Made by a program: the position numbers and the translations under genes. A model generated the notes under the pieces. It worked only from the letters and a program-made list of their open reading frames with translations. It was not told the origin of the DNA and searched no databases. A DNA stretch of 64,000 bases from Selaginella moellendorffii (taxonomy: Eukaryota > Plantae > Lycopodiophyta): NCBI RefSeq assembly GCF_000143415.4, contig NW_003314389.1, forward strand, positions 75,135 through 139,134, given 5' to 3'. Below, one piece after another: positions 14,122 to 46,320 of the stretch; the stretch's first letter is position 1; the number at the start of each line of letters is the position of its first letter.

Positions 14122-14138
14122 TGGCGACCACGGTGGGA
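14122..14138 (+). promoter_or_regulatory. Primer binding site, probably for tRNA-Arg(UCG)
   Basis: TGGCGACCACGGTGGGA, 1 nt after the LTR, is complementary with one difference to the recalled plant tRNA-Arg(UCG) 3' end TCCCACTGTGGTCGCCA. Confidence 0.75.
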
Positions 14139-14205
14139 TAGAGCAGATCAAGACGATCATTTTCCCCAAAACTTCAAGGAAAACGGACCAAAGACGCTCA
14201 AGAAA

Positions 14206-16202: not shown

Positions 16203-16345
16203 GAAGACTCAAGACACAAGAGCTTGACTTCGTATTTATACAACAAAATCACACTTGCAGAAGACTCAAGACACAAGAGCTTGACTTCGTATTTATACAA
16301 CAAAACCAAACTTGCAACAGACTCAAGACGTAAGAGCTTGATTTT
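16203..16345 (+). repeat. About 57-60 bp tandem repeat (about 2.5 copies) upstream of gag
   Basis: agactcaagacacaagagcttgacttcgtatttatacaacaaaa..cttgca is repeated. Confidence 0.85.
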
Positions 16346-16446
16346 GCAATCTATGAAGAACAACATTTGACTCAAGACAATTTAGGCAACACATAAATTC
16401 AGGAAACTTACCTCAACATTCACGTTGAGAAGACTCAGCAAATTGA

Positions 16447-18582
16447 ATGTACAAACACAAACCAGACCCAATCAAGATCCGGGAAAGAGATCTTCGACAA
16501 AAGAATCGAGAAGTGAAAAAGGAAGGGATAGAAAAAGAGAAATTAGAACAACAACAGCAACAAATTTTAGAAATGATATTAGAAAAATACGACAAGGAGG
16601 ATAAAGAGATTCAAGTTGCCGAGTCGAGCAACCCAGTTAAAGATAACAAAGAACTAAATATCGAAGACGCCCCAGAGTTTGAGGCATTTGAAGAAGCAGA
16701 ATACATAGCACCAAAGTTTTACTTAAATCCAGACTCACCAGAACAACAATTTCACCAACAAAGTCTACAACTTCAAATGGCAATCATCAACCCAGCGACA
16801 GCCATAGGGAACATGATTTCCTATCCCATTTTTACTGGTGGAAAAACCGAAGATGCAAACCAGCATCTTAAACAATTTGATCAAATTGTAAAGATGAACA
16901 AACAGGAAGTGCATCGAGAAATACTTTTCCCATACACACTTAAAGGAAAAGCACTCGATTGGCATAATACACTCGATGATGCTTTGACCCATGATGAAAA
17001 GGTCACACAATTCAAGGAGCAATTCCAGACCGGTGGAACTCCAAAAGAACACTATGAGATCATCAAAAACTTCAAGCAAAAATCACGTGAAGGAATTCAA
17101 GATTACACTCGACGATTTAAGTTTCATGCAAAGCGCTGCAAAGATTTGATAACAGATAAAGGAAAGAGCTTATCCTATATCCAAGGACTAAAAGAAATCT
17201 ATAGAAACATGGTAGCAATTGCTGCTGCAACAGAGAATCCAGATGATGAAAGTGTTGATACACTCTCCAAAGAAATCCTCACATTGGAAAAGAGATTCAA
17301 GCAATTCACAAAAGCTATACCTTCACAAACCGATGACGGTTCAGATGATGAAGAAGAGGAAGAAATACGCATTAAGACAAAGAAGAAAACACCCAAAGAC
17401 CAAGACTTGAAGGATATAATCAGGAAAATCTCGCAAACCGAACTCAAAGCAGGAGTGTGGTGTACAAAAGGTAAAAACGAGGGACATACATATTCGGAAT
17501 GCAAGTTACAGCTTCCAAAGTGTCAAATTTGTGAAAGAGAAGGCCATACAGCCAAGAAATGCCGATACAGGAATACAATGNNNNNNNNNNNNNNNNNNNN
17601 NNNNNNNNNNNNNNNNNNNNNNNNNNNNNNNNNNNNNNNNNNNNNNNNNNNNNNNNNNNNNNNNNNNNNNNNNNNNNNNNNNNNNNACAATTATTATCAA
17701 CGTGATGATAATTTGTATAATCAAAGACAAAACTATTACCAGCAAGACAATAGCAACTACAATAGAATACCCCCTCAAGATCAAAGACCAAACAACTATA
17801 CTGGAAATTATGGAAGAAACTACAATACATATCAGCAACGTGATGGACCTCAGGACAACTATCAACGTCCTCCCCCACGAAATTACAATTATGATCAAGA
17901 ACCATATCGGAATTATAATCAAAGACCACCCCAGGCTCAAGGTTACAATTACAACCAGCAACCTGCACCGCAGCAAGATAATCGTCCCCAACAACCTTAC
18001 CAAAATGCAAATCGCGAAAATAACCAAGGAGTAAACAATCAGGCTCCGAGGCCAAGACCACCAGCAGCACGAAATGTTGAGGTGGAAATTGACGACCCAC
18101 AAACTTTTGAAGAACCAGCAATACGAACTATCACGAGACAACAATCCAAGTATCAGCAACCAGATAATCTGGAAGAACAAGATTACAATGATGAAGTTGA
18201 AATTATCCCAGAAACCGAATGGAAGAAAAGCAAGAAAATACTTAAAGCAATTCAAGCTGAATTGCAAGCACAAGATCCAGAAACAATCAAAGAACACGAC
18301 AAACAATCAAACAATCAAGAAACAAGAAGTTTTACCCAAGAGGAGTTGGCACCTGTTCAGCAGAAAGAAAAGTTTCATGTGGAAGAGCAAGCTGAAGCAA
18401 GGTTGAAGCAAAACCTGGTGGAAGATGAACAGCCTGATCAGATTGAGCAACCAGCAGAAGAAGACAAAGACCTGCAGTGGATAAAGGAGTTTCAGACGCA
18501 GGAACTTGAGGTGGTGCTTCCGAAGTTTTGTGAGCAGACGGAGCAGAAGAAAAATTCAATGCCAGAGTTTGACGTGGAATAG
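16447..18582 (+). CDS. Retrotransposon Gag-like protein (spans the N gap 17581-17686)
   Basis: Capsid-like YPIFTGGKTEDANQHLKQF, LFPYTLKGKALDWH and FKQKSREGIQDYTRRF; knuckles CTKGKNEGHTYSEC (degenerate) and CQICEREGHTAKKC; then a Q/N/Y/P/R-rich tract and an acidic tail. No protease, RT or integrase motif. Frame continuity across the gap is unverified. Confidence 0.85.
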   Translation: MYKHKPDPIKIRERDLRQKNREVKKEGIEKEKLEQQQQQILEMILEKYDKEDKEIQVAESSNPVKDNKELNIEDAPEFEAFEEAEYIAPKFYLNPDSPEQQFHQQSLQLQMAIINPATAIGNMISYPIFTGGKTEDANQHLKQFDQIVKMNKQEVHREILFPYTLKGKALDWHNTLDDALTHDEKVTQFKEQFQTGGTPKEHYEIIKNFKQKSREGIQDYTRRFKFHAKRCKDLITDKGKSLSYIQGLKEIYRNMVAIAAATENPDDESVDTLSKEILTLEKRFKQFTKAIPSQTDDGSDDEEEEEIRIKTKKKTPKDQDLKDIIRKISQTELKAGVWCTKGKNEGHTYSECKLQLPKCQICEREGHTAKKCRYRNTMXXXXXXXXXXXXXXXXXXXXXXXXXXXXXXXXXXXXNYYQRDDNLYNQRQNYYQQDNSNYNRIPPQDQRPNNYTGNYGRNYNTYQQRDGPQDNYQRPPPRNYNYDQEPYRNYNQRPPQAQGYNYNQQPAPQQDNRPQQPYQNANRENNQGVNNQAPRPRPPAARNVEVEIDDPQTFEEPAIRTITRQQSKYQQPDNLEEQDYNDEVEIIPETEWKKSKKILKAIQAELQAQDPETIKEHDKQSNNQETRSFTQEELAPVQQKEKFHVEEQAEARLKQNLVEDEQPDQIEQPAEEDKDLQWIKEFQTQELEVVLPKFCEQTEQKKNSMPEFDVE

Positions 18583-20911
18583 GCAGCAGCTGGTCAAGCT
18601 GGCTTGGAGCAGAAAGCTGTTGTGAAGAAGAAAGAAGAAGATGTTGGACAACAAAGAGGTGTAGAAGTTCAGAACCTTGTGGAGCAGCCATCAAGAGGAG
18701 CCGTATACCCAGGCCAAAGTTTGCACTTGAAGGTGGCTGGTGTGAAGTTGGTGAAGAGACGAGGAAGTGTGTTTCTCAAGTTCTGGTGGGACAGAGGCAA
18801 GCTGGTTTCATCCTTTGTAGCTCTGTAGGAGTAGAGGAAGTAAGTAGTAAAGCAGCAAAACTGAAAGCCATCCAAGAGAAGTCGTGGCTGTTTCAAGTCG
18901 GATGTTTAAAGTTTCGAGAAGAGGCGTTTGTGCAACTGATCTCGGGAAGAAGCTGGTCAAATTCAGATCACAAGACTTTGAGGAAGCAGCTCAGACTTAT
19001 GAAGAGGAGGAAGAGGAGGAGAAGCCACATGAGGGAGCAGCTACCCACGATGCAGCAATGGAGCAGTGACTGCGGGACGCAGCACAAGGCAGTCGTGGGA
19101 GAGTGGAGAAGGGAGAAAAAGACAAGCTCGAGGATTCAAGCTTAGGAAAGTAAACTTGAGAGGTTCAAGGTTAGGACTATATTCCTAACCTTGACGTGAG
19201 CAATAGCAACTATAAAAGTAGGACTTAGAATGTTTTTAGACTTATCCCTAATACAAAATACATTGCAATACATCGTCTTTTTGCCTATCTCTTCGGCTCT
19301 TCACAGCAATGTCTTACTTACCCACCGCCTTCAAGGGATCAAAGGCGTGGGACTAGCACCTTCAAGCATTTGTTCACAGTCTCAACTTGGCTTGGCACAA
19401 GCAGGTAAGTGCATTCTTCTTGTAGTGTAGTTTTAGATTTAGGGACTAGATTAGATTTGAATCTCCTAGGAAGATCTCGTGTGGACGTTTTCCTCCCAGT
19501 CCAGAGAGTCCAGGAGTTTTCAGTCTTGGCACAAGTGGGGAGTGTCGTAAAAGTAGGCTTATAGAGCCGAGGGTGTGGAGACACCGAATGTGCCAAGGTG
19601 TGTTGCCTTGAGGTCAAGTTAGTGGGTTTATGAGAACCCCTTCCCAGAGGAATCCTAATGGAAATGGGAATAGCATGGCCTAAGCTGGAAGGCATGCAAT
19701 TGGAGTGTGGTGACCCAGATAATGATGGAGGTGTGGAAGCACCAAGCAATGAGTTGTAGGACTTGACAACTATGGGGCAACTAAGCAAGAGGTGCAAGGT
19801 AATTGGTTAAACGGGTAGAAGGTAGCTACCTAAGACTTCTTAATGGCATAAAGAAGTTAGATATACCCTTATCGGGGATAAGTTGCTTATGTTGCGATAT
19901 AGTGAGTCAATGTCATAAAAGGAAATGCTCGTTGTTAAGGAGGCCATCATTGGAACACCCAAACACTCTAGAACACCAAGAGGTGGTGTTTAGTGTCGCA
20001 ACGGCATTAGATAAGGCCCAAGGGACTAAGTCCCTAGCGAATGATGGATAGAAGGCACTATCCAAACGTCTAAGGTTGCAAAGACGGGAAAAATCTCTCT
20101 ACTCGACTTAAACAAAGCTAAAAAAGGAATTTGGCGAGGCTAATGATGGGCATATAAAGGCCCATGAGTAGCAACATTAATCCCAGTATGTGGAATTACA
20201 AAGTGAGCATACCCGGATTGAGGAACCACTCCCAAAGCTATCGGGTAGGTTCATCCCTATGAATACTTGCTAAGGCATAGTAGAAAGTGCAAAGCTACCC
20301 TCCTATTCTAGAGGAGAATAACTGAAGGAAATATATAAGGCCAAAAAGAAAAGTAGTAAAGGGATGGGACTGAGCCATAGGAATTGAAGGGCATAACCAA
20401 GGGTGGTTATGTAAATTGGGAGTGGAGAATCAAGTGGGTGCTCGAGTGTGTTGCCGCTAGCAATTGTGATGCCATGAAGAGTCTAAGTATGGAATTGTCC
20501 ATGTTAGACCATATGGCAATTTAAAAGCTTGCGAAAAGAGAGGCTCTAGCTAGCTAAGGGATGGAGTTCCTTTAAAGGTTCCCAAAGGCAATTCTAGGTA
20601 GAGTAGTACCTAGACAGACAAGTGTAAATGGCTCATAAAACGCGTGAAATCAGAGTGGCAGAGCAGAAACGTGGTCTTGAAGCTGGTTATGAGGCAAGGC
20701 TATCAAGGTTAGGGAAGTAGTTCCCAAGTGTTCAAAGTGAAGGCTTTGAACAAAAGTCGATGGTTAAAGACTTTCATGCTTATGCATGAACCATGTTACG
20801 ATGGCCGGATGACTTGCTACGCGAGATTGGCGAGTCAGGGGAACAAATCCCCTAGTTGAAGGTGCTAACTTCAAAAGGGGTGGCCCATGGGGCTGAGCAT
20901 GAAGGAGTCCT

Positions 20912-21026
20912 TTCAAGTCGGAGCTTTTAGTCCAAACGTGTTACATTCGTTTGGCTTTTGCTTTAGCCACTACCACGTGGCAGCCTTTTGGCTCCACTTC
21001 GGGGCCTAGAGATTTTTTGTCTCACA
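20912..21026 (-). repeat. Inverted fragment of the LARD LTR 5' end
   Basis: Reverse complement of tgtgagacacaaaatccctaggcccc...agctccgacttgaaa (10974-11089). Confidence 0.9.
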
Positions 21027-22400
21027 ACTAGATTCATTGGAAAGAATCCAAATGGGAAAGTTAGTTGAGGAACACTAATGTGTTAGATGCTAATAAATTG
21101 TAGGAAAAGAAGTGTGCTTCCAAGAATAAATTCCCAAATGCTCTAATTTAGCAGCTCCAAGGGAGGGAGCAGCGAGGTAGCCAAATGATAGGGCTATGGA
21201 CAGCTCTAATACAAATTATGTAAAAATGAAATTTAGTGCTTAGAGTGGCATGAAATAGAAAAGAGGATGAACTTCCTAAGATAGGGAAGTGGAATTTGCA
21301 CAATATGTGCAATGAAAGGTATCGAAGACATCTAGAAATTGACTTCATGAAGTCAAAATTAAAAGTTCCAAAGATGAATGGTTATATCGATAGAGGTTGA
21401 GACGACTCGAGAATGTTAGTGGGATTGAGATAGAGAAGGTGTCTCTAACAAGTTTAGCAAGAACTAAACCAATAAGAAGGGGAGAACCACCCTAGGTGGT
21501 CGAATGAATCTCTATACTGGAGAGACTATACTCCTTAGAGGATGGACAAGGCATGGTGACCCTTTAGTGTCAAACATTGATGAATATTAGGTGGGTGCCA
21601 AGGATCTCAGTGCCAAGGATGGAAAGGGTAATACATGTTAGTATTACTTTATAAAATGGTTTACCATTCGATGAGGACATCAAACTTTGTCTATAGGTGG
21701 TGGAGTTGTGAGACATAAAATCCCTAGGCTCAAGGAACGAGCACAAAATAAGCAATAAATGAACCTCTAAAAAAGGGGGATAAAAGGACCAACACATGAC
21801 ACGTGGAAGTGTCCGAGATGGAGTCCAAGATGAACACGAGATGGAGTCTGAGATGGACCCGAGAGGGAGTCCAAGATGGACCTGAGACAGAGTCCAAGAT
21901 GGACCCAAGATGGACTCCGAGATGAATTGAGATGGAGTTTGAGATGGACCCAAGATAGAGTCCAAGATGAACCTGAGACGGAGTTCGAGATGGACCCGAG
22001 ACAAAGTTCGAGATGGACCCGAGATGGAGTCCGAGATGGACCCGAGATGGAGTCTGAGATGGAGTTCAAGATGGAGTCCGAGATAGAACCGGAATCGAGA
22101 CCGAGATCGAGTCCAAGTCAAAGTTCGAATACCAATACAGGCTGTTGGGTGAAAGCCCAAAGTGATCGCCAATGGACCCCAATGGAGCCAGTTGGCTAGG
22201 AAAGGCCAGTTTGGCCCAAGAAGGCTGTAACCAGGTGTTGGGTGATGGGATAACCACTAGGAAGTCCAAGGCTAGAGTGAATATGCACCAACAAGTGGGG
22301 TAGCTTGCTGAAGTGTTCAAGATCTAGCTCTAGTTCCCCCAGGAGATCAAATGGTCAATGCTCCTAGTCCAAGCGTGGGCAGCACTACCTACTTAAATAC

Positions 22401-23618
22401 TGTGAGACACAAATCCTTAAGCCCCAAAGTGGAGCCGAAAGGGTGCCAAGTGGTAGTGGCCGAAGCGAAAGCCAAATGAGCATAACACATTTGGAATAAA
22501 AGCTCTCATTTGAGGAGTCCAAGATGAACCGAGATGGAGTCTAAGATGGACCTAAGATGGAATCCGAGATGGAGTCCGAGAAGGATCCAAGATGGAGTCC
22601 GAAGTCGAGACTGAGAACGAGACCGGGACCAAGACTGAAACCGAGACCAGGACCGAGACTGAGACTGGGACCGAGACCGAGACCGAGGCTGAGGCCGAGA
22701 CCGAGCCCAAGCTCAAGGTCGAGTTCAAGTCCGAGTCCGAGTCCGAGTCCAAGTCCGAATCCGAGTTTAAGTCTAAGAGGGTGAAAGCCTAAACGTTCAT
22801 CTCCCAGACCCTAGGGGGTTTGGTGAGCTCCAAAAGTATAGTAGGGGGAGGACTCCAGTGGAGCCAGTTTGGCCAAGAAAGGCTAGTTTGGCCCAAGAAG
22901 ACTGTACCCAGGTGTTGGGTGATAGGATAACCACTGGGAAGTCCAAGGCTAGAGTAAATACAAACTAACAAGCGGGGTAGCTTGGTGAAGTCTTCAAGAG
23001 CCAGCTCTAGTTCCCCCAGGAAATCAAACAGCCGATGCTCCCAGTCCAAGTGTGGGTGGCACTACCTACTTGGTTACCTAGCGTGGCTCAATAGAACCTC
23101 GCTCTGAGCCCATGGCTAAAGCACCCAAAGGTGGAAGGTGGGGAGAGTACCTATGGGGCTTGCGTAGGGCCACGGTATTCCGAAATGTTGTCCCAAAGTC
23201 CCAGACTATGGAAAGGAAGAGGAATGATCCTCTGGTGTAGTGACCAATGATATGGTCATGTGGTGAGGAAGTCCCAAAGGATAGTGGGACTTAGTGGTCG
23301 GGCCTGTGGACCTTGTCCTAGTGGCAGTGTTGGCAAACACAGCCATGGACAGAAAAGGGACTTGATGGAGACTATAAAAGGGATATTGGAGAAGGTTATT
23401 CCCCATGTCGGCGGGCATCTTAAGGATGCTAAGGAGTGGACCTAGGATGGTCACTCATTGATGGATGGCCTAGTCTTTGAGAGTTGGGACTATGATGTAG
23501 GTGGTGTTGGACCATTGGTGTGACCATGGGGAATGAGCATGGCCTTAGCGTAATGGGCTAGTATGTCGGTGGTACCTTGGGGTGTCGGTCATGGGATTGA
23601 ACATGTGGAGCACTAGGA
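22401..23618 (+). mobile_element. LARD-family LTR inserted in the 3' LTR of copy A, truncated at its 3' end
   Basis: A new tgtgagacac start lies mid-LTR; the sequence is collinear with 29188 to about 30910 and stops at gagcactagga. Confidence 0.85.
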
Positions 23619-26600
23619 TGTATAGTAGGGATAGTGGGTAGGTCGAGTATAGCTGACCAACCTGAGGCATAGTCTAGCTCTTGCTTATGTGCCTGTCCTT
23701 GTTTTGCATCCGGCTTGGGTCTAAGCTCAAGTTCCATTCCATGCGAGCTAGTGGAGTACCCATGTCCTCACATTAGGCCACTAATATGCTAAAATAGCAC
23801 TAGACTTCGTTTGGCTCTATTTTGCGTGCTTTTACTCTAGGACTGTTCCAAGTCACTCCGTGCCCCTATCCCTTCACTCCTTGGGCTATATGTTTGGGAG
23901 TTGCTCCATGGCTCGGTTCTATCACTCCCTGGCTCCATGCTTGGGAGTTTGGCACTGTTCCTTCGTTTAGTGGCCCAAGGCCCTAAAACTTAGGTTCCAC
24001 ACCATTGTTCTTTAGACATGTGGTATGTGACATCTAGCATCTGTCATGTGGCACAAAGAGGGTTTAGGTTCCACTTCGTGGTGTTATCCTATATTAAATC
24101 ACCATAGGATAAAAGGTCAAAACCACGTGTGCTACATTTGGTATTAGAGGATGAGTCTCGGCAAGTACTATCCAATGAGATTGGGCAACTAGTCTTGTTG
24201 CATATGCAAATATGAAAATGATGATCCAAGTGGGTACACGTTTGGGTGCAAAGGCTTCACTTTGGTTCCTTGGTATGGATTTTGGTTACCTTTTTATACC
24301 TTATTATGTGAGCTTGCTCTTGGGCTCATAGGATGGAATAAGCTGTTCCGTTTGCACGAGTTTGTGCTTGGGCTCGTGAGTGAGGCACATTAGCAACTCA
24401 AGATTACACTTTGAGTTGGCAGGATTAATGTTAGCCTATCCGTGATTCCATGAGTTGTTTCTTGTACCATGGGAGAATGTAAACTTTCCCTGGGTTTGCT
24501 ATGAGTGGTAAATAGGCTGGTCCGTAGCTATTTAGCACAGCACTAGTGGATCCTTCCTAGGCATGATTACAAGTGGATCAATCAAGACTATAGGGATGAG
24601 TCTATTGATTCAAGTAATCCTTGCCGTGCTCTCTCATAAACTTTTCTTGGATTGGACTAAAGGCAGTGCAAAAGCAAGCTTGAGGTTTAGTCAAATATGA
24701 GACCGAAAAGAAAGTCCTCAGGGATGAAGGATCAAACATATAAATCATCTTCTTTTCTTGGAGAGATGATTTGCAATGAGGTGTTAACTCATTAATCATG
24801 TTCACATCGTGCAATCAAGAGTCTCTATCTTGATGTATGTTGAGTATGATGGTCTTACAAATGGTGAGTTGTGGGATGGATAGCGGTGAAGTGCTAAACC
24901 ATTTTTGTCTGGGCTTGCTATTGGAAGACTTAGGTTACAATACTCAATTCTTTTTCGGGGAACCTTGTTATTACTCCTTGAGTAACTTGGTGTTAGTTTA
25001 GTTTTGAGTTTGGTCAGAAAGAGAGTGACATGAGCTTGTCCGTGTTGTGAACAAAAGTTAATGGTCTTCGGTGTTGTAAATCTATATCGGTGGGGTGTGG
25101 CATTTATGTTGCATTTTGTCGAATCGAGTTGGCACATGATAGTCACATGAACATTTGTAGTAGTGACATGTGCATTGCTCATAGTGTTGCTCAATTGATG
25201 ATCAAGTCATTGTGATACTTATATCATATCCATGTGATAGTGAGCAATGTGTTTACAAAGTTAATTGGTTAAACGATAATCAACCCCAAAGTGGTTGATA
25301 GTGAAGCTAGTCTACTTGCAAGTAGTAACATTGAAGTAGCTTCAACTAAGTTCTCCATAGTGTTCCATTATGCTAAGTTTAAGTTGGTAGCTTGTTTCCG
25401 TGAGAGTTTGCCTATAAAGTGTTGGAAAAAGGTTGTAGCATTCATTTGCTATAGCTTGTCAATTGATCTGTTAGCACTTGGAGTAGATTGTTGGATGGAG
25501 AAGGTGTGTAGTTGGGATATTGATATCACTAGCGCTTGTGTTAGTGGAAGTACCATTGTTATTTCGAGTGATGAGGAATTTTTCTTAGACCTTGATTTTT
25601 CATGTCATTTTTCTTGTTAGTGTTTTGACTTTACATTGAATCTTGAAAGCGATTGAAGAAGAATGTTAGTGCAGATGTCCGAAGATGTGGTTTGCGTGAT
25701 CAAACCTTGGATGTTCATTTTGCATTTTACGGATGTCGATGGTGGAAATTGGAAATATGGGCAAAGATGTTTGATGCTTAAGCATATTGTTGGATCATGA
25801 GAATTTGTGTTGAGGTGAACCTATGTGAAGTTGTTTATAGGAGGAAGTTGGTTGAGTTTTGAAAGTTTGCAATCCTAGACCGAGAGACATTCTTTCTCTA
25901 GGATGGAAAATTTTTCCACAAATTTTCTTAGACTTTTCCAATGGTTGATCTATTGATTACTTTGCTCGAAAACCATTCCGTTTTCGTAAGCTAGTACAAA
26001 CTAGTGAAGGGCTTGGAGTTGACTTTGGTTAGCTTAGACCCTAGTAGGTAGTTTGTATGATGCGGCCCAAAGGGGATGCTGACTTTTAAGGCTAAGGCGA
26101 TTGAGTTGGATAGAGTCTAGAGTTGGTATAGAAAAATGGCCGTTGCGCTTTTCTAAGAAGGGTGACCCTTGTGCCTTTCTTTTATAGTGTTCTGCTTGGT
26201 TTCAGGTTGCACCTTGCATTTCATTAGACTCTATGAGAGTAGTAAGTTCTCACTGATCCTGATTTGGTCTTGGTGGTCTTTCACCTTGGATGAGGATAGT
26301 GATGTCCAACTTAGTTATTTGAAGTTGAGATGTTAGTACTCGTACTACAACTTTGTCTATGAGGAGGTTGTGTACCAATATGAGTCCATCTTACGGTCTT
26401 CACTTTTGTTTCAACTGAGTGTTGATCATGCATAGCTAGCCTTTTCAAGGCATGCTCAGAACTATTGGCTAAATGCATTAGTGAGCTTATTTCAGTTGAG
26501 TTAGATTCTAGTGTCATTTAGTTATATTTATCCATGAACCTTTATCTCATACTTGAGGTATTACGTTCATGTTGGATGAGTATATGACTAGATGACATGA

Positions 26601-27128: not shown

Positions 27129-27502
27129 TGTGAGACACAAAATTCCTAGGCCCCAAAATGGAGCCGGAAGGGCACCACGTGGTAGTGGCCGAAGTGAAAG
27201 CCAAATGAGCATAACACGTTTGGACTAAAAGCTCCGACTTGAAAGGTCGAGAGTGGGAGTGGAACTCCCAACAAAGTGCTCGAGGAATGAGCATGAAGAG
27301 AGCAATAAGCAAGACTCTAAAAAGGGACCCAAAAGGACAAACACATGACACATGGAAATGTCCGAGATGGACCCGAGATGGAGTCCGAGATGGAGTCCAA
27401 GATGGACCCAAGATGGAGTCTGAGATAGATCGAGACGGAGTCTGAGATGGAGTCCGAGATGGACCCGAGATGGAGTCCGAAATAGACCGAGACGAAGCCC
27501 GA
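27129..27502 (+). mobile_element. LARD LTR 5' fragment interrupted within its minisatellite by copy B
   Basis: tgtgagacacaaaattcctagg start; the array is cut by a new LTR start at 27503. Confidence 0.85.
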
Positions 27503-28323
27503 TGTGAGACACAAAATCCCTAGGCCCCAAAGTGGAGCCAAAAAGGGTGCCATGTGGTAGTGGCTGAAGCGAGAGCCAAACGAGCGTAACACGTTTGGAC
27601 CAAAAGCTCCGACTTGAAAAGTCAAGAGCGGGAGTGGAACTCCCAACGAAGTGCTCGAGGAACGAGCACGAAGCGAGCAAAAAGCGAGGCTCCAAAAAGG
27701 GACCCAAAAGGACCAACACATGACACGTGGAAGAGTCTGAGATGGAGTCCGAGGTGGACCCGAGATGGACCCGAAATGGAGTCCGAGATGGAGTCCGAGA
27801 TGGAGTCCGAGGTGGACCCGAGATGGACCCGAAATGGAGTCCGAGATGGAGTCTGAGATGGACCCGAGATGGAGTCCGAGATGTAGTCTGAGATGGAGTC
27901 CGAGATGGAGTCCGAGATGGAGTCCGAGGTGGACCCGAGATGGACCCGAGATGGAGTCCGAGATGGAGTCCGAGGTGGACCCGAGATGGACCCGAGATGG
28001 AGTCCGAGATGGAGTCCGAGGTGGACCCGAGATGGACCCGAGATGGAGTCCGAGATGGACCCGAAATGGAGTCCGAGATGGAGTCCGAGATGGAGTCTGA
28101 GGTGGACCCGAGATGGACCCGAAATGGAGTCCGAGATGGAGTCCGAGATGGATTCTGAGGTGGACCCGAGATGGACCCGAAATGGAGTCCGAGATGGAGT
28201 CCGAGATGGACCCGAGATGGAGTCCGAGATGGACCCAAAATGGAGTCTGAGATGGACCCGAGATGGAGTCTGAGATGGACCCGAGATGGAGTCCGAGATG
28301 GAGTTCGAGATGGAGTCCGAAGT

Positions 28324-28358
<35 letters not shown>

Positions 28359-29187
28359 TCGGGACCGAGAACGAGACCGAGGCCGAGGCCGAGACCGAGC
28401 CCAAGCCCGAGTCCGAGTCCGAGTCCGAGTCCGAGTCCGAGTCTGAGAGGGTGAAAGCCCAAAGCGTTCGTCTCCCAGACCCTGGGGGGTTTGGTGAGCT
28501 CCAAAAGTATAGTAGGGGGAGGACTGCAGTGGAGCCAGTTTGGCCAGGAAAGGCCAGTTTGGCCCAGGAAGGCCAGACCCAGTGTTGGGTGATGAGCTGC
28601 CCATTGGGAAGTCCAAGACTAGAGTGAACACAGACCGACAAGCGGGGTAGCTTGGTGAAGTGTTCAAGAGCCGGCTCTAGTTCCCCCGGGAGATCGACTA
28701 GCCGATACTCCCAGTCCAAGTGTGGGTGGCACTACCTACTTGGATACCTGGTGTGGCTCAACGGAACCCGCTCTAAGCCCATGGCTAGAGCACCCAAGGG
28801 CAGAAGGCGAGGAGAGTACCCAGGTGGCTCGCGTAAGGCCACGGTGTTCCGAAATGTTGTCCCAAAGGCCCAGACTGTGGAAAGGAAGAGGAGCAGTCCT
28901 CTGGGGTAGTGATCAAGGACACAGTTGTGTGGTGAAGAAGTCCCAGAGGACCGTGGGACTTAGTGGTCGGGCCTGTGGGTCTCGATCCAGTGACAGTGTT
29001 GGCAAACACGGCTAGGGGCAGAAAGAGACTTAGTGGGGACTGACAGAGGGATATTGGGGAAGGCTATTTCCCTTGTCGGTGGGCATCCTAAGGATGCTAA
29101 GGAGTGGATCTCAGATGACCACTCACGGATGGTTTGCCTAGTCTTGGAGAGCCAAGACGGTGATGCAAGTGGTATTGGACTACTAGT

Positions 29188-31063
29188 TGTGAGACACAAA
29201 ATCCCTAGGCCCCAAAGTGGAGCCGGAAGGGCGCCACATGGTAGTGGCCGAAGCGAGAGCCAAACGAGCGTAACACGTTTGGACCAAGAGCTCCGACTTG
29301 AAAAGTCAAGAGCGGGAGTGGAACTCCCAACGAAGTGCTCGAGGAACGAGCACGAAGCGAGCAAAAGGCGAGGCTCCAAAAAGGGACCCAAAAGGACCAA
29401 CACATGACACGTGGGAGTGCCCGAGATGGACCCGAAATGGAGTCCGAGATGGACTCGAGTTGGAGTCCGAAGTGGAGTCCGAGATGGACTCGAGTTGGAG
29501 TCCGAGGTGGACCCGAGATGGACCCGAAATGGAGTCCGAGATGGACCCGAGATGGACCCGAAATGGAGTCCGAGATGGACCCGAGATGGAGTCCGAGATG
29601 GAGTCCGAGGTGGACCCGAGATGGACCCGAAATGGAGTCCGAGATGGAGTCCGAGATGGATCCGAGATGGAGTCCGAGGTGGACCCGAGATGGACCCGAA
29701 ATGGAGTCCGAGATGGAGTCCGAGATGGACCCGAGATGGAGTCCGAGATGGAGTCCGAGATGGACCCGAGATGGAGTCCGAGATGGAGTCCGAGATGGAG
29801 TCCGAGATGGACCCGAGATGGAGTCCGAGATGGACCCAAGATGGACCCGAGATGGAGTCCGAGATGGAGTCCGAGATGGAGTCCGAGATGGAGTCCGAAG
29901 TCGAGACCGAGACCGGGACCGAGACCGGGACCGAGACCAAGACCGAGACCGAGATCGGGACCGAGACCGAGACCGAGGCCGAGGCCGAGACCGAGCCCGA
30001 GCCCGAGTCCGAGTCCGAATCCGAGTCCGAGTCCGAGTCCGAGTCCGAGTCCGAGTCCGGAGCCTGAGAGGGTGAAAGCCCAAAGCGTTCGTCTCCCAGA
30101 CCCTGGGGGGTTTGGTGAGCCCCAAAAGTATAGTAAGGGGGAGGACTGCAGTGGAGCCAGTTTGGCCAGGAAAGGCCAGTTTGGCCCAGGAAGGCCAGAC
30201 CCAGTGTTGGGTGATGAGCTGCCCACTGGGAAGTCCAAGACTAGAGTGAACACAGACCGACAAGCGGGGTAGCTTGGTGAAGTGTTCAAGAGCCGGCTCT
30301 AGTTCCCCCGGGAGATCGACTGGCCGATGCTCCCAGTCCAAGTGTGGGTGGCACTACCTACTTGGATACCAGGCGTGGCTCAACGGAACCCGCTCTAAGC
30401 CCATGGCTAGAGCACCTAAAGGCGATAGGTGGGGAGAGTACCCAGGTGGCTCGCGTAAGGCCATGGTGTTCCGAAATGTTGTCCCAAAGGCCCAGACTGT
30501 GGAAAGGAAGAGGAGCAGTCCTCTGGGGTAGTGACCAAGGACACAGTCATGTGGTGAGGAAGTCCCAGAGGACCGTGGGACTTAGTGGTCGGGCCTGTGG
30601 GCCTCGATCCAGTGGCAGTGTTGGCAAACACGGCCAGGGGCAGAAAGGGACTTGGTAGGAACTGACAAAGGGACTTTAGGGAAGGCAATTCCCCAGGTCT
30701 GTGGGCATCCTAAGGATGCTAAGGAGTGGATCTAGGATGACCACTCGTGGACACATGGCCCAGTCTTGGAGAGACGAGGTGGTGATGCAAGTGGTGTTGA
30801 ACCACTAGTGCAGCAAAGGTGAATGGGCATGGCCTTAGCGTAACGGGCCGAGATGTCAGTGGTACCTTTGGGTGTCGGTCTCAGGACTGGACACGTGGAG
30901 CACTTGGACCAGGTGCAAGTGTGGAGTGGCATGGATGCCATTCATGGGGCTAGCAAGTCCCAAGTCCTGAATTGGACTGATGGAGGTTGTGAATGAGACT
31001 CCTCCAAGTGGTCGGAGGTGTGGTTAAGTGACTAAAGTAGAATGGAAAATTTAGTCGCTTACA
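29188..31063 (+). mobile_element. Complete LARD solo LTR (1876 bp) inserted in an LTR of the same family
   Basis: TGTGAG...CTTACA with perfect TSD CTAGT at 29183-29187 and 31064-31068; the host LTR resumes in register. Confidence 0.95.
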
Positions 31064-33865
31064 CTAGTGTGGCAAAGGTGATTGGGCATGGCCTTAGCAT
31101 AACGGGCTGCTATGTCGGTGGTACCTTTGAGTGTCGGTCATGGGATTGGACACGTGGAGCACTTGGACCAAGTGCAAATGTTGAGTGGCATGGATGCCAT
31201 TCTCGGGGCTAGCAAGTCCCAAGTCCTGGATTGGACTTATGGAGGTTGTGAATGAGACTCCTCCAAGTGGTCAGAGGTGTGGTTAAGTGACTAAAGTAGA
31301 ATGGAAAATTTAGTCGCTTACAATTTGGTATCGGAGCTGTTCCTTAGTCCGACTTTTATTGGTGCTCAAGTATATCACCACTAGTGTTGGCATCGGAAGG
31401 TCCAAGGAGTGGGCCTATCCTTGAGGAGTAGCAAGTCGGGAAGACATGGCTTTCCATTACAGTTCATGTGTGAACTTGTAGACGAGGTGGTGGATAGAAA
31501 AGGGCCAATAATGGAACGACTTTGGGATCTTGGGAACAGTGCAAGGTTTTCCTCATTGAGTTGAGGATGTGATCCGGATGAGCATTTGTCTCAGCAAATT
31601 GGCTAAGGTTGTTGTGGTAAACAACTAAAGTTGGGATCACGGGAAAGATAGAGACTCCAAAACAATAAAGGAGTCACAAGATTATCCTCATATAGTTGAG
31701 GTTGGTGCTCATGAATGTGAGACCAGAGGTAATGACCGTGGGAGGTCAAATACGGAAGAGGACTCAAGTCCTTGAAATGGTAGTCGGGGCTACCTTTAAT
31801 AAATGCTAGAACAACCCAAGGAGTTGGGGGGTGTACTTAGAGATGAGTGGTATTCTCATCGCATGGACAAGTAGTCCTAAGGGGCAAAAGTTGCCCCCAG
31901 AGAACAAAATCAAGTGTCGGAGTAACACTTGTGAAAATAGTCCTTTTGAGTAGGACAGGAATGCAAGAAGTGTATTCCAGTGAGCTAGTGCCTCACAAGT
32001 AAGACCTTACGGGTCTGTGGATTAGCCAAGTCCAAAACTGTTGGATGACTCAAGTAGAGTCAAGGGATGGTCCTAAATGGACTGATGGAAGCATTTGGAC
32101 TGAGGTGTGTTGTACCCCACAAAGGATGGGGGGGGATCATAGGATCCAAGGATGAGAACAGAGGGTATCTCATCGATGGCAAAATGTGCCATGCTAAAGT
32201 TATGGGAAAGGTGTTCCCAAAAGAAAACAACTTTGACACAAAGTTGTGTGTGACCTCTATGGTGCAGTGCTAACGGATGGTTGGCATGAGAAAGGGCGGT
32301 GTTGGTCTTGGCAAAGACTTAGACACGAAGGGAAAGTGTCATAGAGGTAGGCTCGTGGAGCCGATGGTGTGGAGACACCAAATGTGCCAAGGTGTGATAC
32401 CTTGAGGCTATGTTGGTGGGTTCATGAGAACCCCTTGCCAAAGGAATCCCAATGGAAATGGGAATGGCATAGCCTAAGCTGCAGAGCATGCAGTTGGAGT
32501 GTGGTGACCCAGATAATGATGGAGGTGTGAAAGCACCAAGCAATGAGTTGTAGGACTTGACAACTATGAGGCAACTAAGCAAGAGGTGCAAAATAACTAG
32601 TTAAACGGGTAGAAGGTAGCTACCCAAGACTTCTTAATAGCATAGGGAAGTCGGATATACCCTTACGGGGGATAAGTTGCTTGTGTTGCGATATAGTAAG
32701 TCAATGTCATAAAAGGAAATACTCATTATCAAGAAAGCCATCATTGGGACACCCGAACACTCTAGAACACCAGAAGGTGGTGTTTGATATCGCAAGGGCA
32801 ATGGATAAAGCCCAAGGGACTAAATCCCTAGCGAATGATGGATAGAAGGTGCTATCCAAATGTCCAAGGTTGCGGGGACAGGAAAGGACTGTCTACCCGA
32901 GTTGAACAAAGCCAAAAATGGAATTTTGGCAAGGCTAGTGATGGGCATGTAAAGGCCCATAAGCAACAATGTAATCCCAGTGTGTGGGATTATAAGGTGA
33001 GCATACCCGGATTGAGGAACCACTCCCTGGGCTATTGGGTAGGTTCATCCCTAAGAATACTTGCTAAAGCATGATAGAAAGTGCAACGCTATCCTCCTGG
33101 TTTGGAGGAGAATGACCAAAGGAAAGGTGTGAAGCCAAAAAGCAAGAAGTAAGGGGATAGAACCGAACCATAGGAATCAAAGGGCATAACCAAGGTTGGT
33201 TATGCCAGCTGGGAGTGGAGAATCAAGTGGGGGCTCGAGGGTGTTGCCGCTAGCAACCATGATACCATGGAGAGTCTAAAATATGGAATTGTTCATGTTA
33301 AACTAGGTGGCATTTGGAAGGCTTGCAAAAAGGGAGGCCTTAGCAAGCTGAGGGATAGAGTTCCTTCAAGGTTCCCAAAGACGATTCTAGGTAGCTTAGT
33401 ACCTAGAAAGGCCAAGTGTAAATGGTTCATGGAATGCGCGAAATCAGAGTGGCGCAGCAGAAGCGTGGTCTTGAAGCTTGCCATGAGGCAAGGCTATCAA
33501 GGTTAGGGAAGTAGTTCCCGAGTGTTCAAAGAGAGGGCTTTGAACGAAAGTCGATAGTCAAGGACTTTCACGCTTATGCAGGAACCATGTTACAGTGGTC
33601 GGAGGACTTGCCAAGCGAGATTGGCACGTCGGGGGAACAAATACCCTAGTTGAAGGTGATAACTTCAAAAAGGGTGGGCCATGGGGCCAAGCGTGGAGGA
33701 GTCCATGCATGATCACAGACATGTCAAGTGAGAGGACTTGGCAATGTGGAGGAACTAGGTTCCTAAGCTGTGATCTGTAGCGCGCTTTAAAAATATGTTG
33801 GTGCACTGGCGTGGGGAGTCACGCTAGGCATCTTGTGTGATGCCATCTGTAGATGCATATACGGA

Positions 33866-33920
33866 GGTTGGGTTCGAGTCCCGACCCTCTAGTGCTTGGG
33901 TTCGAGTCCCAAATCACTAG
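33866..33920 (+). promoter_or_regulatory. Two tandem tRNA T-arm-like hairpins with B-box consensus
   Basis: ggttggg-TTCGAGT-cccgacc (33866-33886) and ttggg-TTCGAGT-cccaa (33896-33912, extended by ctagtg/cactag). Both contain GGTTCGAGTCC. Function is not shown. Confidence 0.55.
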
Positions 33921-36900
33921 GGCGTGGTGATGGTTTGGAATATGAGGACACTCATATTTCGGTGGTCATGGACTCTCAGTGGGGAGACTGGTTTGGGCAC
34001 ACCACCAAGCGAGGGATGCCTCGAAGTCGTGATGCACGGTTATATTGCTTATTGTGAAAGCTCGGCATATCTAACTTGAACGCTTTGGTGCAAGTGGCAC
34101 CAAGGACGTGGTGAGTGAGATGGGGACACCTAATCTCAGTTGCTATGGACCCTTGGCCGGAAGGGCTGGCTTGGGCGCACCGCCAAGTGTGGGGGATGCC
34201 CCCGGGGTCGTAGTTAACAAGTTAAAGGTCTGGAAGACCTAGTACCTATTGGCAAACCTGTTAAGGTGCCGAGGTGAGATCACTAGGTGATCTTGTGGCT
34301 AAATAAGGACAAAGTCCTTGTTTGGGTTAAGGAATAAGGTTCCTAGTTCAAAGTGTTGATTTGAACTATTGATTATGGTGTGGGTTGGTCAAGGTGACCA
34401 AGTGGGAAAAGCACCTTAGGGAAATGAGCTATGTCATTGCGATGGCATAGTGTGTCCAAGGAAAGTAGTCTCTAAAGAGACCCATGAGAGGGTCACAAAG
34501 GTGGGCCGAGGATAGAGCCCACAGCAGAAGATGCTAAAAGAGACTTACTAGGGGTGAACACCCTAGTCTTGGCAAAGCAGAGCCTTTGCTATGGAATCAA
34601 AAGAATATCTCAAGGAGGGAGGTAGAGATTCGATGTTGCTTGGTGCAACAATCAACGGATAGGAGCAGAAGATGAGTGGCCAAGATAGGGCCGTGGAATC
34701 CCTTGGAAGGAATCCAAGTGACAAAGTTAAGCGAGGAACACTAATGTGTTGGACGCTAATAAATTGCGGAAAAGGAAGTGTGTTTCCAAGGATGGATTCC
34801 GAATTGCTCCGATTTGGCGAAAGTGGAAGCTCCAAGAGAGGGAGCGGTAAGGTAGCCAAATGATGGGCGATGGACAACCCTAGCACAAGGTGTGATAAAT
34901 GGAACTTAGTGCCCAAGGTGGCACGAAATAGAAGAGAGGATGATGGTGCCCTCAAGTAATGAACTTCCTAGGATAGGGAAGTGGAGTTGCACAATCTGTG
35001 CAATGCAAGGTGTTGGAGACACCTAGGAAATTGACTTCCAAAAGTCAAAAGAGTAAAAGTTCCAAGGTGCAAACATTCAATAGATGGAAATTGAGACTAC
35101 TCGAGAAGGAGTAGTGGGATTGACTTAGAGAAGGGTCTCTAAGAGGTTTAGCAAGAACTAAACCAATAAAAGGAGAGAACCACTACATGTGGTCCAATAA
35201 GTCTCTAAGTTGGAGAGACTACCCTCCTTAGAGGATAGGCAAGGCATGGTGAGCCTTTGGTGTTAAACCATTGAGCATATACAACTAAATGACTCAAATC
35301 TATCATAGAAAACTACTAGCTAGGATTCTAGCTCCATTGGAAAAAAATAGATTAAAATAAATATAAAATAATTCCTAAAGAATTTTTTTTTTAGCAAACT
35401 TTTTTGTGATTCCTTTAGATATTACAATAATTTTTGAAATGAATAGTTTTAAATATTTTATGATATAGTTGTAAACCTTTATACGAATGATGGAGAGAGT
35501 AGTTTTTGGAATAATGTTTAGTGCTAATAAGTTAAAAGCATATTAAGAGCATAAACTAATACTAATACTATTTTAAAAGATTTTATAAGAAAAAAATAGA
35601 ATAAACCAATTTTCATAATTATTAATCAAAAGTAACTCTTTTATATTTCTAATTTGCAAAAATTGTATTGAGTCTATGCATGACATGGAAGCCCACTTTA
35701 CCCACTTTACCCAATTGGAAATTATTATTTAGAGGATTCTCCACTACACTATATGAGAAAAAAGATTGTCCACTCACATTCAAGCATAAAGCAATTGTTA
35801 AGTATAGTGTAATGTTTGTGTGTATTTAGAGAAAGAAGTGCTCCACCAAGGAGAAGAACAATGACTTGATTTACAAGAAAAGAGTATATTTGTTTGGAAA
35901 GTGTATGATTATTTTGGTTTACCCTTTATCAGAGAGATTAAAGTAGGTTCTGATTTACTGGGAATGTAGTTTAGCTTTCAAAGTTTCTACAGATAGGTGC
36001 TTATCCATTACATTACATAAAAGTGCACCCAGTCTGGGAAACATTGAGTGAACGTGAAGTCATTGCTCTTGGCATGGTAATGGTTTGAAGTTTCTTTCTG
36101 TAGCCTCTTACAAAGAACTTTCAACTTGTCCAAGTTTGATACTTATGTCAGCACTTGGGCTCTTAATGTTCCTAGAAGATTCTCATGCAACTAAATTCAA
36201 CAGGTGGTAAAGATCATTTGGAGAAAAAACTGTATACCTCTAAGTCAGTGATAGACCTTGCTATGAGTGCCACAGTCTATGCTCTGATCCCTTACATAGC
36301 ATTTCTTACACGGTCTTGATTGTGTCTGTAGAAAAATCTGGGATTCTAGATCAATTTGTCTCTACAGAAAAACAACCTTGCTGCTAGGACAAAAAAAAAA
36401 AAAAAAACCAACCACCAGATGGTTCTTCCAGGGCTTTTTGAGGGAAATAATAGTTCTTAGCTTCATTAATGCATTGTGTAGAGATGGGATATAAAAACAA
36501 TAATTGATGTTATTATTTGTCTGTTTTGTAGCAAATGAATGTCAGACTTTGAGCGCAAGAAACTTGCCTGGTTGGCTCTGTTGTGCTCATTTGTGTGAGT
36601 CTCAAAGAGAGAGAGAAGTGAGTTTATAGGTCGCTGCAATTTTCTTCTGTCATGCCACATCCATAGAGAGATGAAATTTATGTGGAGATGCAGCAGCTGG
36701 ACATGCAAATGAAAGGTACCTCTAAGACATCAAAGTGGACGGCATTTTTTGGATAAACAAGAAACAGATGTGCCACCTCCAATGCCAGAGCTGCGAACCG
36801 AATCGTCTTGGTCCATCAACCTTGAGGCACGACTGAATTGCCTGTGCAATGTAGGAAAGACATTGGAAAGGAGACAAGGGCTTGTTAGCCAGGAGCCTTT

Positions 36901-43228: not shown

Positions 43229-46049
43229 CTCTAAGAGGAATCAAAGAAGTTGAAGAAAGTGAAGCTCCAATCGAAGGAAGATATAATTAAATATCATTAT
43301 ATTTTAGTATGAATAATTTTCTAAACCAATTTTAGTCTTAAAGATTAGCATTTTCTACAACATCGATCTTACAACTGATATAAATCCCAGCTGAAAATAT
43401 GTTTCTTTTTTAATAATTTTATTTAAAAAAAGTTTTTATATTTTATGTAGATAATGGTATTATATAGTATTTAATAAATACAAAAATTTCTTACAGTTAG
43501 ACAGAAGCAGTGGTTCTTGCAATATAAAATATATTTTAATTATTCATGTATATAGTATTATTTTAGATCTAATTATATAATTTTTAGTTTTATGTACAAT
43601 AAAATCTAGGTTTGAAAAATCTAATTTAAAATACAAGAGAATGATGAAGTAGAGTGGATAAAATAAATTTTTTAAACAATATTTAAAAAATTAAATCTTA
43701 TTATGAATATAATAATGTTATTTTTTATGTTAATTGCTAACATTTCCTACTAGATTGATTTACTGGTAGTATTGTGTAACTAATTGTAATCAATAGTGGT
43801 ATACTTTCATTAACAACAATTCAATCCTAGAAAAAATCAAATACAGCTTCTTTACAAAACATAAACAAACTAAACCCACTATGAAGGAAATCCTTCAAAC
43901 TTTTTCATCATAATAATTTTATTTTTATTTCCAAACTATTATAATCTAATTATTTATTTTAATCTTATATTTTACTTCAATATCTATAAAAACAATTACA
44001 TGCTTTTGTTATATATGCTAAGTCCACTTATAATATAAATATATTCCCACCTTCTTCAAATATATATATAAAAATATTTTTCTCAAACGAAATTATATGA
44101 TACTCCTAAAAGTTTGTATTTAGGACTTTTGAACAAGGTGTGTTATTTAGAATTTTTATTTTTTAACTCCAAGAGATGTAAATAGTGGCAAAAAAAATTA
44201 AGTGTTATAGATGGGTTTTACAAGATGACAAATATATTAAAAAAAAACTGAAAGGTGGATTTGAATGTTAATAAAAAAAATATTTAGACTATATATATTT
44301 TAGTTTAAAACCAGATAGTGGAGTATTTGAAGCAAGTAATAAAATAAAAGAGTGTTATTGTTATGAAATATAAATTAGTAATTATATTAGAAACTAATTT
44401 ATCTTTTCTATACAGAGAATGAACTTAACATGAATATACTTAAAGAAAATGAAAAAAATGTCATTAGTTATGGAGGATTTTTATAATTGTAAATAATTTT
44501 AAAAATCATATTTAGTCAACAAGAGTAGAGTTTTCTACAACATTCATTTTAAAATTAATATAAATTATAAGAGTAAATATTATTTTTATAAATGTTTTGA
44601 TAAGTAGATGCTACATTTGTGTTATAAAACAATAATACATTTTATATTATTTCAATCATAGAATAAATGTTATTAAAGTTTTATTATATATTAGTATGAT
44701 ATCTAATTATATAATTTTTTTAAGTTGTTTAAAATTCAAGGATAAAAAATTTATGTTTTAATAAAATAAAGTAAAGAATAAAAAGCAATGGTAGCACTTT
44801 ACTCACAAATGGCAAACTTAATACTACAATATTTTTCTCTAAATTAGAAATATAAATTGAAATAGTGAATTCCTAAATTTTTCTTATATAATACATAATA
44901 CATATGAATATTAATATTTTCATAGTAATGTGTTAGATCCATGTTTATGTTTAAAACAATAATAATTTTATAAGCTATATTAATATGTGATCATGTTCAC
45001 CTTTATATAATTGCTTATTAGTGAGTAGTGTTGAATAAGTTAATAGTAATTTATTTTTTATTGGAGTCCATAGCTTTATCATAAAGCATTATTACAGTTT
45101 TTTGTTAAGATGAACATTATATCTACTTTAAGTATATTTTTAAATGTAAAAACAAATATATAATAGAAATTTTATTATTCTTTAGTAAACTATGCAATTT
45201 AGAGGCAATATTACAGTTAAGTAAAAATTAATGTTAAAGGTATTATTACAGTTCAGATAAAAACACTTTAGCTCAATATGCAATCAAAATTATAATTTCC
45301 CAAAATTAACCTATTATGTTTTGTTAGTATACATTTTTTTTTAATGAGCATTTAATTTATTTTAAATCATGGCAGCAATCTTGTAAATGTGTTAAGGTTT
45401 TTGTACTTTTTTATAAAGGCAATAGAAGAATTCAATTTCGAATTTAGTGATGATTAAAATATGATCTTATCTTCCCAAACATTTGCATCATTATCTAATT
45501 GCATTATTTTCCATTTCTCTGCAGATGAATAGTTGCAAAATTAAGATAAATTTAACCTTGCATACAATCAAAATTTATAACATTGAACAATTAAAAATGA
45601 AGATCTATTTATCTTGGGTATGATATATCTCCCTGAAAATATTTCAGCATACTCATTGTTCTATAGAACAAAACCTTTACAGAACAAAGAGTATTTTATT
45701 GATTCAATACTATATTATTAAAATTAAACATAATTTTGTTGTGCAAAGATGGTATATAGTAGATACAATAGAAAATACAGTACAAGACTAGAATAGAAGA
45801 CTTCACTCAACAAAGAGAATTTTAAATATAAACTACTCATTGCTATCTCTTATGGCTTGACATCCAGATGATAAATATTCCAAACCATCTTCAGTTCCAC
45901 CAACTAATAAATCATAATGATATAACAAATGCACGATACAATGAATATAGATGGTAGTAAATTCTTGACAAATTAACCTTGTATGCATTTAAAATAGTAA
46001 GTTTGCCAACCAAGATACATTCCCAGCAGAGCTGGGATCCTTGCTATGG

Positions 46050-46320
46050 CAAGAGAGCACGGGTCTTAGGAGAGTGATGGTTATAAGCTTTCATTCATGA
46101 GGGTGTAAACTTACAAAAGAAGTATGGTGGATTATATGCAACAAAAAAGAATAATTTGAAAGATGATATATATAAAATTAAATATAAAGGGAAAGGATTT
46201 TTAAATAAAAGTGCACATTTTATTCCAATTGGTTAAGGGTATTAGGATACTCGGGGGTTTAATATCTTAGGGTTAGAGTAGGATGACCTCCCAAAATGTT
46301 GAAATTCCAGAGTTTTCTCA
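46050..46320 (+). repeat. Highly decayed Cassandra fragment (3' internal region, PPT and LTR)
   Basis: agctttcattcatgagggtgtaaacttacaaaagaagtatggtggat and ttccaattggttaagggtattaggatac...gatgacctccc are collinear with about 6205-6478. Confidence 0.8.

Follow-up and report, generated by a model that had tools for sequence, protein, structure and literature searches.

Cassandra TRIMs, as Kalendar et al. reportedly described them in 2008, have short LTRs with a 5S-like segment, an iMet PBS and a tiny non-coding interior. They occur throughout the vascular plants, but an autonomous partner of theirs is not known; Kojima states that nothing points to one (PMC10886601). A 64-kb window of lycophyte DNA, the whole stretch analyzed here, carries a Cassandra unit together with two copies (A and B) of a large non-coding LTR element. 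This raises the question of how the two families are related, and whether they are served by the same helper. The features of the Cassandra unit and its surroundings are as follows.

3080: iMet PBS of a degraded chromovirus-like gypsy element, which hosts the Cassandra unit in its RT gene
5884-7346, forward strand: Cassandra tandem unit of four LTRs and three interiors, from the sequence and self-BLAST (94-96%)
5884-6079, 6285-6478, 6684-6877 and 7153-7346, forward strand: the four Cassandra LTRs, with corrected bounds
6080-6284, 6479-6683 and 6878-7152, forward strand: the three Cassandra interiors
6082, 6481 and 6880: iMet PBS of the Cassandra interiors
6080-6309, forward strand: Cassandra interior 1 with the LTR start, taken as the reference copy of the common block
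6082-6093: PBS of interior 1
6247-6264: hairpin TTCACG..CGTGAA of interior 1
6276-6284: PPT of interior 1, GTGGTGGAT; the LTR begins at 6285
6300-6309: GGAACGACTT in the Cassandra LTR start
7528-7722: solo Cassandra LTR, downstream of the tandem unit

The RT gene of the gypsy element is interrupted at 5884 by the Cassandra unit, which is flanked by a 5-bp target duplication, GTTCG, at 5879-5883 and 7347-7351. The unit has the architecture of a TRIM, that is, short LTRs, a PBS, a PPT and a tiny non-coding interior with less than 1 kb per unit: its LTRs measure 194-196 bp, its interior 205 bp, it is iMet-primed, and its PPT is GTGGTGGAT, the PPT/LTR junction reading GCGTGGTGGAT followed by TGTAAGCAA. 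The segment derived from 5S rRNA that defines a Cassandra is present in each LTR. The 5S_rRNA model (RF00001) matched five of five Cassandra LTRs at 30.4-37 bits (E 1.7e-5 to 9e-4), all just below its gathering score of 38, and at the gathering score Rfam gave no match in the whole 64-kb window. Tandem arrays of the LTR-interior-LTR type are a described feature of Cassandra (Kalendar et al. 2020; PMC7215508), and the unit at 5884-7346 matches Cassandra in its 5S-like LTR segment, iMet PBS, tiny interior and tandem layout.

The two copies of the large element were delimited as follows.

10974-12715, forward strand: copy A 5' LTR, 1.74 kb (1742 bp), running from TGTGAGACA to GCTTACA
12716-12915, forward strand: copy A leader
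12719-12730: PBS of the copy A leader, with two mismatches
12880-12888: pseudo-PPT of the copy A leader
12906-12915: GGAACGACTT of the copy A leader
12716-13701 plus 19523-21706: copy A interior, split by a nested element
13702-19522: young gag-only element nested inside copy A
21694-21715, forward strand: true 3' PPT/LTR junction of copy A, AGGTGGTGGAGT followed by TGTGAGACA, with the LTR starting at 21707
21697-21706: true PPT of copy A
21707-23627, forward strand: copy A 3' LTR, truncated at 23627 by another iMet-primed element
27129-31322, forward strand: copy B LTR zone, 4.2 kb, ending in GCTTACA at 31322
31323-31522, forward strand: copy B leader, corresponding in diverged form to the entire Cassandra interior
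31326-31337: PBS of the copy B leader
31463-31476: hairpin GTTCA..TGAAC of the copy B leader
31487-31495: pseudo-PPT of the copy B leader, GTGGTGGAT
31496-31512: decayed equivalent of the LTR tip in the copy B leader
31513-31522: GGAACGACTT of the copy B leader
31523 to about 35290, forward strand: non-coding interior of copy B past the leader
12916-13701 plus 19523-21706: counterpart in copy A of 31523-35290 in copy B

The length of the LTR zone of copy B results from partial LTR duplications and 12-nt tandem repeats, and no 3' LTR was found downstream of its interior. The element had been estimated at 7.5-8 kb; in the window it comes to ~7 kb once the nested insertion is removed, with an LTR of 1742 bp and an interior of ~3.2 kb. 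It has no gag or pol coding capacity, the longest stop-free piece on the sense strand being 110 aa, and ten pieces of it compared with Pfam at E values up to 1 matched no family. Because no gene remnant was found, the element fits the description of a LARD: it is longer than 4 kb and has long LTRs, a PBS and a PPT, with neither gag nor pol. Judged by its sequence, it is not a Cassandra, because it is without 5S and its LTR bodies have no similarity to those of Cassandra.

The large element belongs to a very abundant family. When reads and contigs were matched at 80% likeness, one DNA run yielded 40,087 contig pieces, and the family is present under a second organism label too. The depth of the leader is similar to that of the rest of the interior, at about one half to one third of the LTR depth; the block is therefore part of the family, as opposed to an insertion private to one copy. 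Many contigs stop exactly at 31322, where 91 loose ends have no common continuation, as expected for the end of an LTR. Loose ends were also seen at 31487; they come from a subfamily with a different upstream sequence, in which the arms of the TTCA..TGAA hairpin are kept. In the ~12% of a raw RNA run that was read, the large element was represented by four reads, a negligible amount. A 176-nt contig derives from a run only guessed to be RNA, and may be DNA. The family was presumably copied in trans.

According to the original prediction, the Cassandra interior, its PPT and the start of its LTR are collinear with the leader of the large element. All of the motifs listed there were found, in the same order and in the expected places, in Cassandra and in both leaders. 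In Cassandra the order is gtccgact, ttggt, caccac, ttgacatc, ggtcca, tgggc, gaggggtag, gtgaacttgcagg, gtggtggat and ccaa..ggaacgactt; the leader of copy B (31k) has the variants ttggcatc, gaggagtag and gtgaacttgtaga, and that of copy A (12k) three single-base variants (gtccaact, catcac and agtcct). The claim that the LTRs of both families end in GCTTACA, followed by an iMet PBS, was likewise borne out by the sequence. MAFFT misaligns the middle third; in the curated alignment anchored on the motifs, whose pair counts are biased towards those motifs, Cassandra and the leaders are 65-66% identical over 198 columns.

Such a similarity might be due to chance or to composition. With the PBS left out (Cassandra 6094-6340 against 31338-31560 and 12731-12950), local alignments scored 22 and 32, compared with a mean of 9.6 (sd 1.3) for dinucleotide shuffles (z 10-17), and the observed scores were reached by none of the shuffles (0/500 to 0/1000). 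Global alignments of the same PBS-less stretches gave z values of 10.2 and 11.9 (overall range 10-12). Collinearity beyond the PBS, as predicted, was thus found in shuffle-tested alignments at z of at least 10, with 0 of 500 shuffles as good. When the strong 3' block was removed, the remaining 130-160 nt gave z 4.6-4.7 (2/1000 and 0/1000 shuffles); the PPT block alone gave z 6.9, and the 13-nt match at the LTR start alone had a p of about 0.013. A PBS-less nhmmer profile of the two leaders matched Cassandra at 6102-6309 (E 4.5e-7) and 6501-6708 (E 1.9e-7), the matches spanning profile positions 10-185 and the E values applying to the 64-kb window. The one point that speaks for chance or composition is the low identity of the middle third, which taken alone gives z 1.1-2.4. 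Against this stand the lack of any equally good alignment among the 500-1000 dinucleotide shuffles, the nhmmer E value of about 1e-7, and the presence of the match in both copies, in register with the PBS and the PPT. An origin of the similarity by chance or composition is refuted, with next to no probability left to it.

Control leaders, namely those behind the iMet PBS at 3080 and 24139 and those of two further elements, gave z values from -1.1 to 1.8, which is at chance against both families. The two other iMet-primed leaders in the window being at chance, the motifs are, in line with the original prediction, not general to iMet-primed families. As far as sequence comparison can tell, the leader of the large element is a diverged homologue of the complete Cassandra interior, and not iMet-family background.

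The homology begins in the final bases of U5, takes in the PBS, the interior in full and the PPT, and continues through ~25 nt of the Cassandra LTR start, where it includes the perfect 10-mer GGAACGACTT; it fades ~25-40 nt into the Cassandra LTR. In Smith-Waterman comparisons, the Cassandra LTR and the LTR of the large element were at chance apart from their tips, and the Cassandra LTR was also at chance against the 400 nt past the block in the large element. A profile of the five Cassandra LTRs had no match in the large element, and RF00001 had none in its LTR ends and leader at E values up to 10. The 3' interiors of the two families match only at the PPT/LTR junction (15/16, with one gap), with nothing upstream.

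The two families also have further replication signals in common. The 8-mer GTGGTGGA, an unusual T-containing PPT core, occurs six times in the 64 kb: in three Cassandra PPTs, in the two leader copies and in the true PPT of the large element. At the U3 tips, 10 of the 14 first LTR bases agree between Cassandra and the large element, and at the U5 tips 13 of the 17 last ones, compared with 5-9 of 17 for controls in the same register. It is the established view of trans-mobilized LTR elements that helper enzymes must recognize the PBS, the PPT and the integrase-facing tips (PMC7215508, PMC10886601). From the common leader, tips, iMet PBS and PPT core it therefore follows that both gene-less families were most likely copied by the same autonomous element. 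Cassandra and the large element probably use one helper by way of a shared replication module, and the shared features would serve as cis signals for the reverse transcriptase, RNase H and integrase of this helper, and probably for its Gag. The common PBS, PPT and tips could also reflect one broad lineage with several related helpers.

It might also be argued that there is no special link, the motifs being a common pattern of a broad iMet-primed gypsy lineage that Cassandra and the large element inherited from different autonomous parents. Two other iMet-primed elements in the window do share TCCRAC ~10-25 nt after the PBS and have a similar U5 end (CAAAATCAGGTGCGCTATA vs. CAAACTCAGGAGCTTACA), and in one of them an LTR motif weakly matches Cassandra (21/24; 37/1000 shuffles). 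However, beyond these few bases the other leaders match neither family better than chance (z -1.1 to 1.8) and the PPTs of the other iMet-primed elements differ, whereas the match between Cassandra and the large element covers the full 200 nt at an E value of about 1e-7. Separate inheritance from different parents appears very unlikely.

Within the 64-kb window, no autonomous element has the leader block or the PPT. The only coding iMet-primed element in the window is the gypsy element with its PBS at 3080, which carries gag, a CCHC knuckle, RT, an integrase zinc domain, a Tf2-type SH3 domain and the weak start of a chromodomain. It was rejected as the helper; its U5 end is similar, but its leader and PPT are different. 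A search of metagenomes for the combination of hairpin and PPT (GTGAACTTGYAG, 5-7 nt, GTGGTGGAT) returned 13 contigs, none of which has an adjoining PBS, LTR end or leader. These contigs were judged to be chance matches and appear to be unrelated microbial DNA.

Tentatively, the 200-nt block may be the recognition module of one autonomous element, used for priming, packaging and plus-strand start, with weak hints pointing to a chromovirus; we regard this as possible, at well below even chances. In either family the conserved motifs pair into four short helices (CCRA:UUGG, CAYCAC:GUGGUG, RGUCCW:UGGGCY and UUGRC:GUCRR), and the GUGGUG arm of the CAYCAC helix is part of the PPT. A TTCA..TGAA hairpin, the loop of which differs by lineage, is situated just 5' of the PPT. 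One closing pair is G-U, G-C and A-U across three lineages, with one two-sided change. It is reasonable to suppose that the block may contain a structured packaging or dimerization signal. The consensus fold obtained with alifold was not significant, with a z of -1.3 to -1.5, 22-29 of 300 column shuffles as good and effectively two lineages compared, and the single-sequence folds were unremarkable (z -0.9 to -2.0). Between copies A and B the leader is 90-92% alike and its flanks 84-92%, so that the leader is no more conserved than its surroundings. The block had been proposed as a candidate packaging or dimerization signal that links a TRIM and a LARD to one helper. Of this proposal, the link between the two elements is upheld by the homology, the tips, the PBS and the PPT, whereas neither the fold z nor the leader-flank comparison lends support to a packaging signal.

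Two origins had been put forward for the shared block: either the large element grew out of a Cassandra-like unit, or Cassandra was carved from the leader of a larger element. The equivalent of the LTR tip bears on this choice. It reads TGTAAGCAA in Cassandra and AGAAAAGGG in the leader, with ~5 of 12 bases in agreement and the TG lost; no other part of the 3' block is conserved so poorly, and the blocks on either side of it are perfectly preserved. A decayed tip fits a once-functional PPT/LTR junction, and on this ground the incorporation of a Cassandra-like unit into a larger element is favored as the most likely origin. Neither the rest of a Cassandra LTR nor any trace of 5S follows the leader block, which counts against embedding.

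In the reverse direction, the leader would be the older form, and the TRIM would have been born from plus-strand synthesis that took the PPT-like GTGGTGGAT of the leader as its starting point in place of the 3' PPT. The product would have had an interior reaching from the PBS to the leader PPT, and LTRs beginning with the sequence just downstream; these LTRs would later have shrunk and captured a 5S gene. A single step of this kind would explain both the correspondence of interior and leader and that of the LTR start with the sequence after the pseudo-PPT, and the true PPT of the large element shows that the helper accepts GTGGTGGA. Maiwald et al. suggest, moreover, that relatives lacking 5S may be forerunners of Cassandra or intermediates on the way to it (PMC10853983). 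However, the homology to the Cassandra LTR ends after ~25-40 nt, and the leader is without the TG tip required by integrase (AGAAAAGGG vs. TGTAAGCAA), a tip that would have had to arise later and mirror the U5 end as a perfect inverted repeat. Birth of the TRIM from the leader therefore seems unlikely.

For embedding of a Cassandra-like unit in the larger element, a route by template switching can be proposed. The RNA of a Cassandra-like unit and that of a larger element would have been packaged together, and the reverse transcriptase would have changed templates some tens of bases into the Cassandra U3. The whole TRIM-like unit would in this way have become the leader of the larger element, and its LTR tip, now useless, would have decayed while the flanking blocks were kept. 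We infer here one helper, the template-switch route and a packaging or dimerization role. Taken as a whole, the combination of a shared module, one helper and embedding by template switch is the best explanation, with somewhat better than even chances of being right.

The closest published precedent is provided by the Cassandra-like TRIMs without 5S in some Asteraceae of the subfamily Carduoideae (Maiwald et al. 2024, Mol Biol Evol; PMC10853983), the very elements suggested as Cassandra progenitors or intermediates, which co-exist with Cassandra in some species. Like them, the large element is non-autonomous and has an interior in common with Cassandra and different, 5S-less LTRs. On the other hand, the Asteraceae elements are TRIM-sized and have a partial interior, whereas the large element, at ~7 kb and with 1.7-kb LTRs, is beyond TRIM size; its leader holds the whole Cassandra interior plus the PPT and LTR start, and its host is a lycophyte, not a member of the Asteraceae. 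Unlike the Cassandra TRIMs themselves, it has no 5S and possesses long LTRs and a 3-kb interior. LARDs (Kalendar et al. 2004, as cited in PMC7215508 and PMC13570524) are abundant elements of more than 4 kb with long LTRs and a non-coding interior, and an autonomous element is assumed to copy them in trans. The large element resembles them in being longer than 4 kb, non-coding and abundant, with long LTRs. For the barley LARDs, in contrast to the large element, no report was found of a link to a TRIM through a common leader. Pairs of a TRIM and a large element, such as OsajRetroS10 and OsajLTRA10, share their LTRs and the PBS-proximal interior, which was taken as a sign of descent and of common machinery (Gao et al. 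2016; PMC4717578). LTR identity in those pairs is 79-98%, the TRIM being simply a deleted version of its partner. In the pair formed by Cassandra and the large element, on the contrary, the LTR bodies are unrelated, the identity is ~65%, and the PPT and LTR start of the TRIM lie inside the leader of the larger element.

What is new is therefore the size class of the partner, the presence of the entire interior with the PPT and LTR start in a leader, the unrelated LTR bodies and the lycophyte host. One window provides a link between two parasites and not the helper itself. A second abundant gene-less family that has the Cassandra interior, PPT core and tips nevertheless supplies a short searchable signature of this helper, and two lineages under the same constraint offer a natural comparison for mapping packaging and priming signals. 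The pair also presents non-autonomous LTR elements as built from swapped modules, not by simple deletion. If the block is indeed a recognition module, gag-pol copies carrying it would identify the helper of Cassandra, and a TRIM and a LARD would be able to swap whole replication modules by co-packaging.

Cassandra, the terminal-repeat retrotransposon in miniature that carries 5S sequence, occurs in the window as a tandem unit and again as a decayed remnant, and copy B of the large non-coding element whose leader is homologous to its interior is itself rearranged.

6878-7152: third Cassandra interior of the tandem unit, with an internal duplication of ~69 nt
46028-46319: remnant of an old Cassandra copy, truncated to the 3' part of the interior and LTR sequence (nhmmer E 7.6e-10 and 1.2e-15)
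27129-31322: LTR zone of copy B, 4.2 kb
33806-33893: 88-nt tRNA-like fold inside the copy B interior (ARAGORN), 4-base anticodon without assignment
49268-54861 and 58459-63993: a further large repeat, two copies, ~90-93% identical

The duplication within the third interior accounts for the array unit lengths of 399, 399 and 469 bp. The truncated fragment lies in an AT-rich repeat region and is itself strongly enriched in AT, resembling C-to-T decay. LTR starts recur in the copy B zone at 27129, 27503 and 29188, its final 260 bp occur in two copies (30803-31061 and 31062-31320), and a 12-nt unit (GAGATGGAGTCC-like) forms long arrays that differ among the LTR copies. The tRNA-like call is probably spurious. 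The copies of the large repeat, each at least 5.5 kb long, are 9.2 kb apart.

Copy A of the large element has been interrupted by two further LTR elements.

13702-19522: young nested LTR element inside copy A
23628-24150: a further iMet-primed LTR element (LTR ~23628-24136, PBS at 24139)

The nested element has 419-bp LTRs that are 99.5% identical to each other, a PBS of non-iMet type and a 711-aa ORF whose sole match is Retrotrans_gag; pol is absent. Its final 30 LTR bases resemble the U5 end of Cassandra (right-anchored test, 1/5000 shuffles), but over their full length the LTRs of the nested element and of Cassandra have no similarity. The iMet-primed element truncates the 3' LTR of copy A. 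Its own LTR has 76% likeness to gypsy LTR sequence at 2843-2942, and the DNA downstream yielded no ORFs.

In the leader of the large element, the PPT-like site at 31487 is joined to an alternative upstream sequence (..TTCATACGTGAACTTGTGCGCAAT) in ~32 contigs of one DNA run and in 3 contigs under a second organism label. These contigs represent a subfamily in which the hairpin arms are kept and the loop and spacer are different.

The element into which Cassandra is inserted may bear on the autonomous helper proposed to copy both families.

3049-3091, 2234-2268 and 2755-2779: iMet PBS, U5 end and LTR motif of the chromovirus-like gypsy host

Besides its iMet PBS, this host has a U5 end like that of Cassandra at ~14/18 bases with one gap, and its LTR motif CCCCTTTTCCAGTTGG.TTAAGGG matches Cassandra CCTCTTTTCCAATCGGTTAAGGG at 21/24 positions (37/1000 shuffles; nhmmer E 0.5). 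The likeness offers a weak lead that the helper lineage may be related to the gypsy-host family, but the host differs in leader and PPT.
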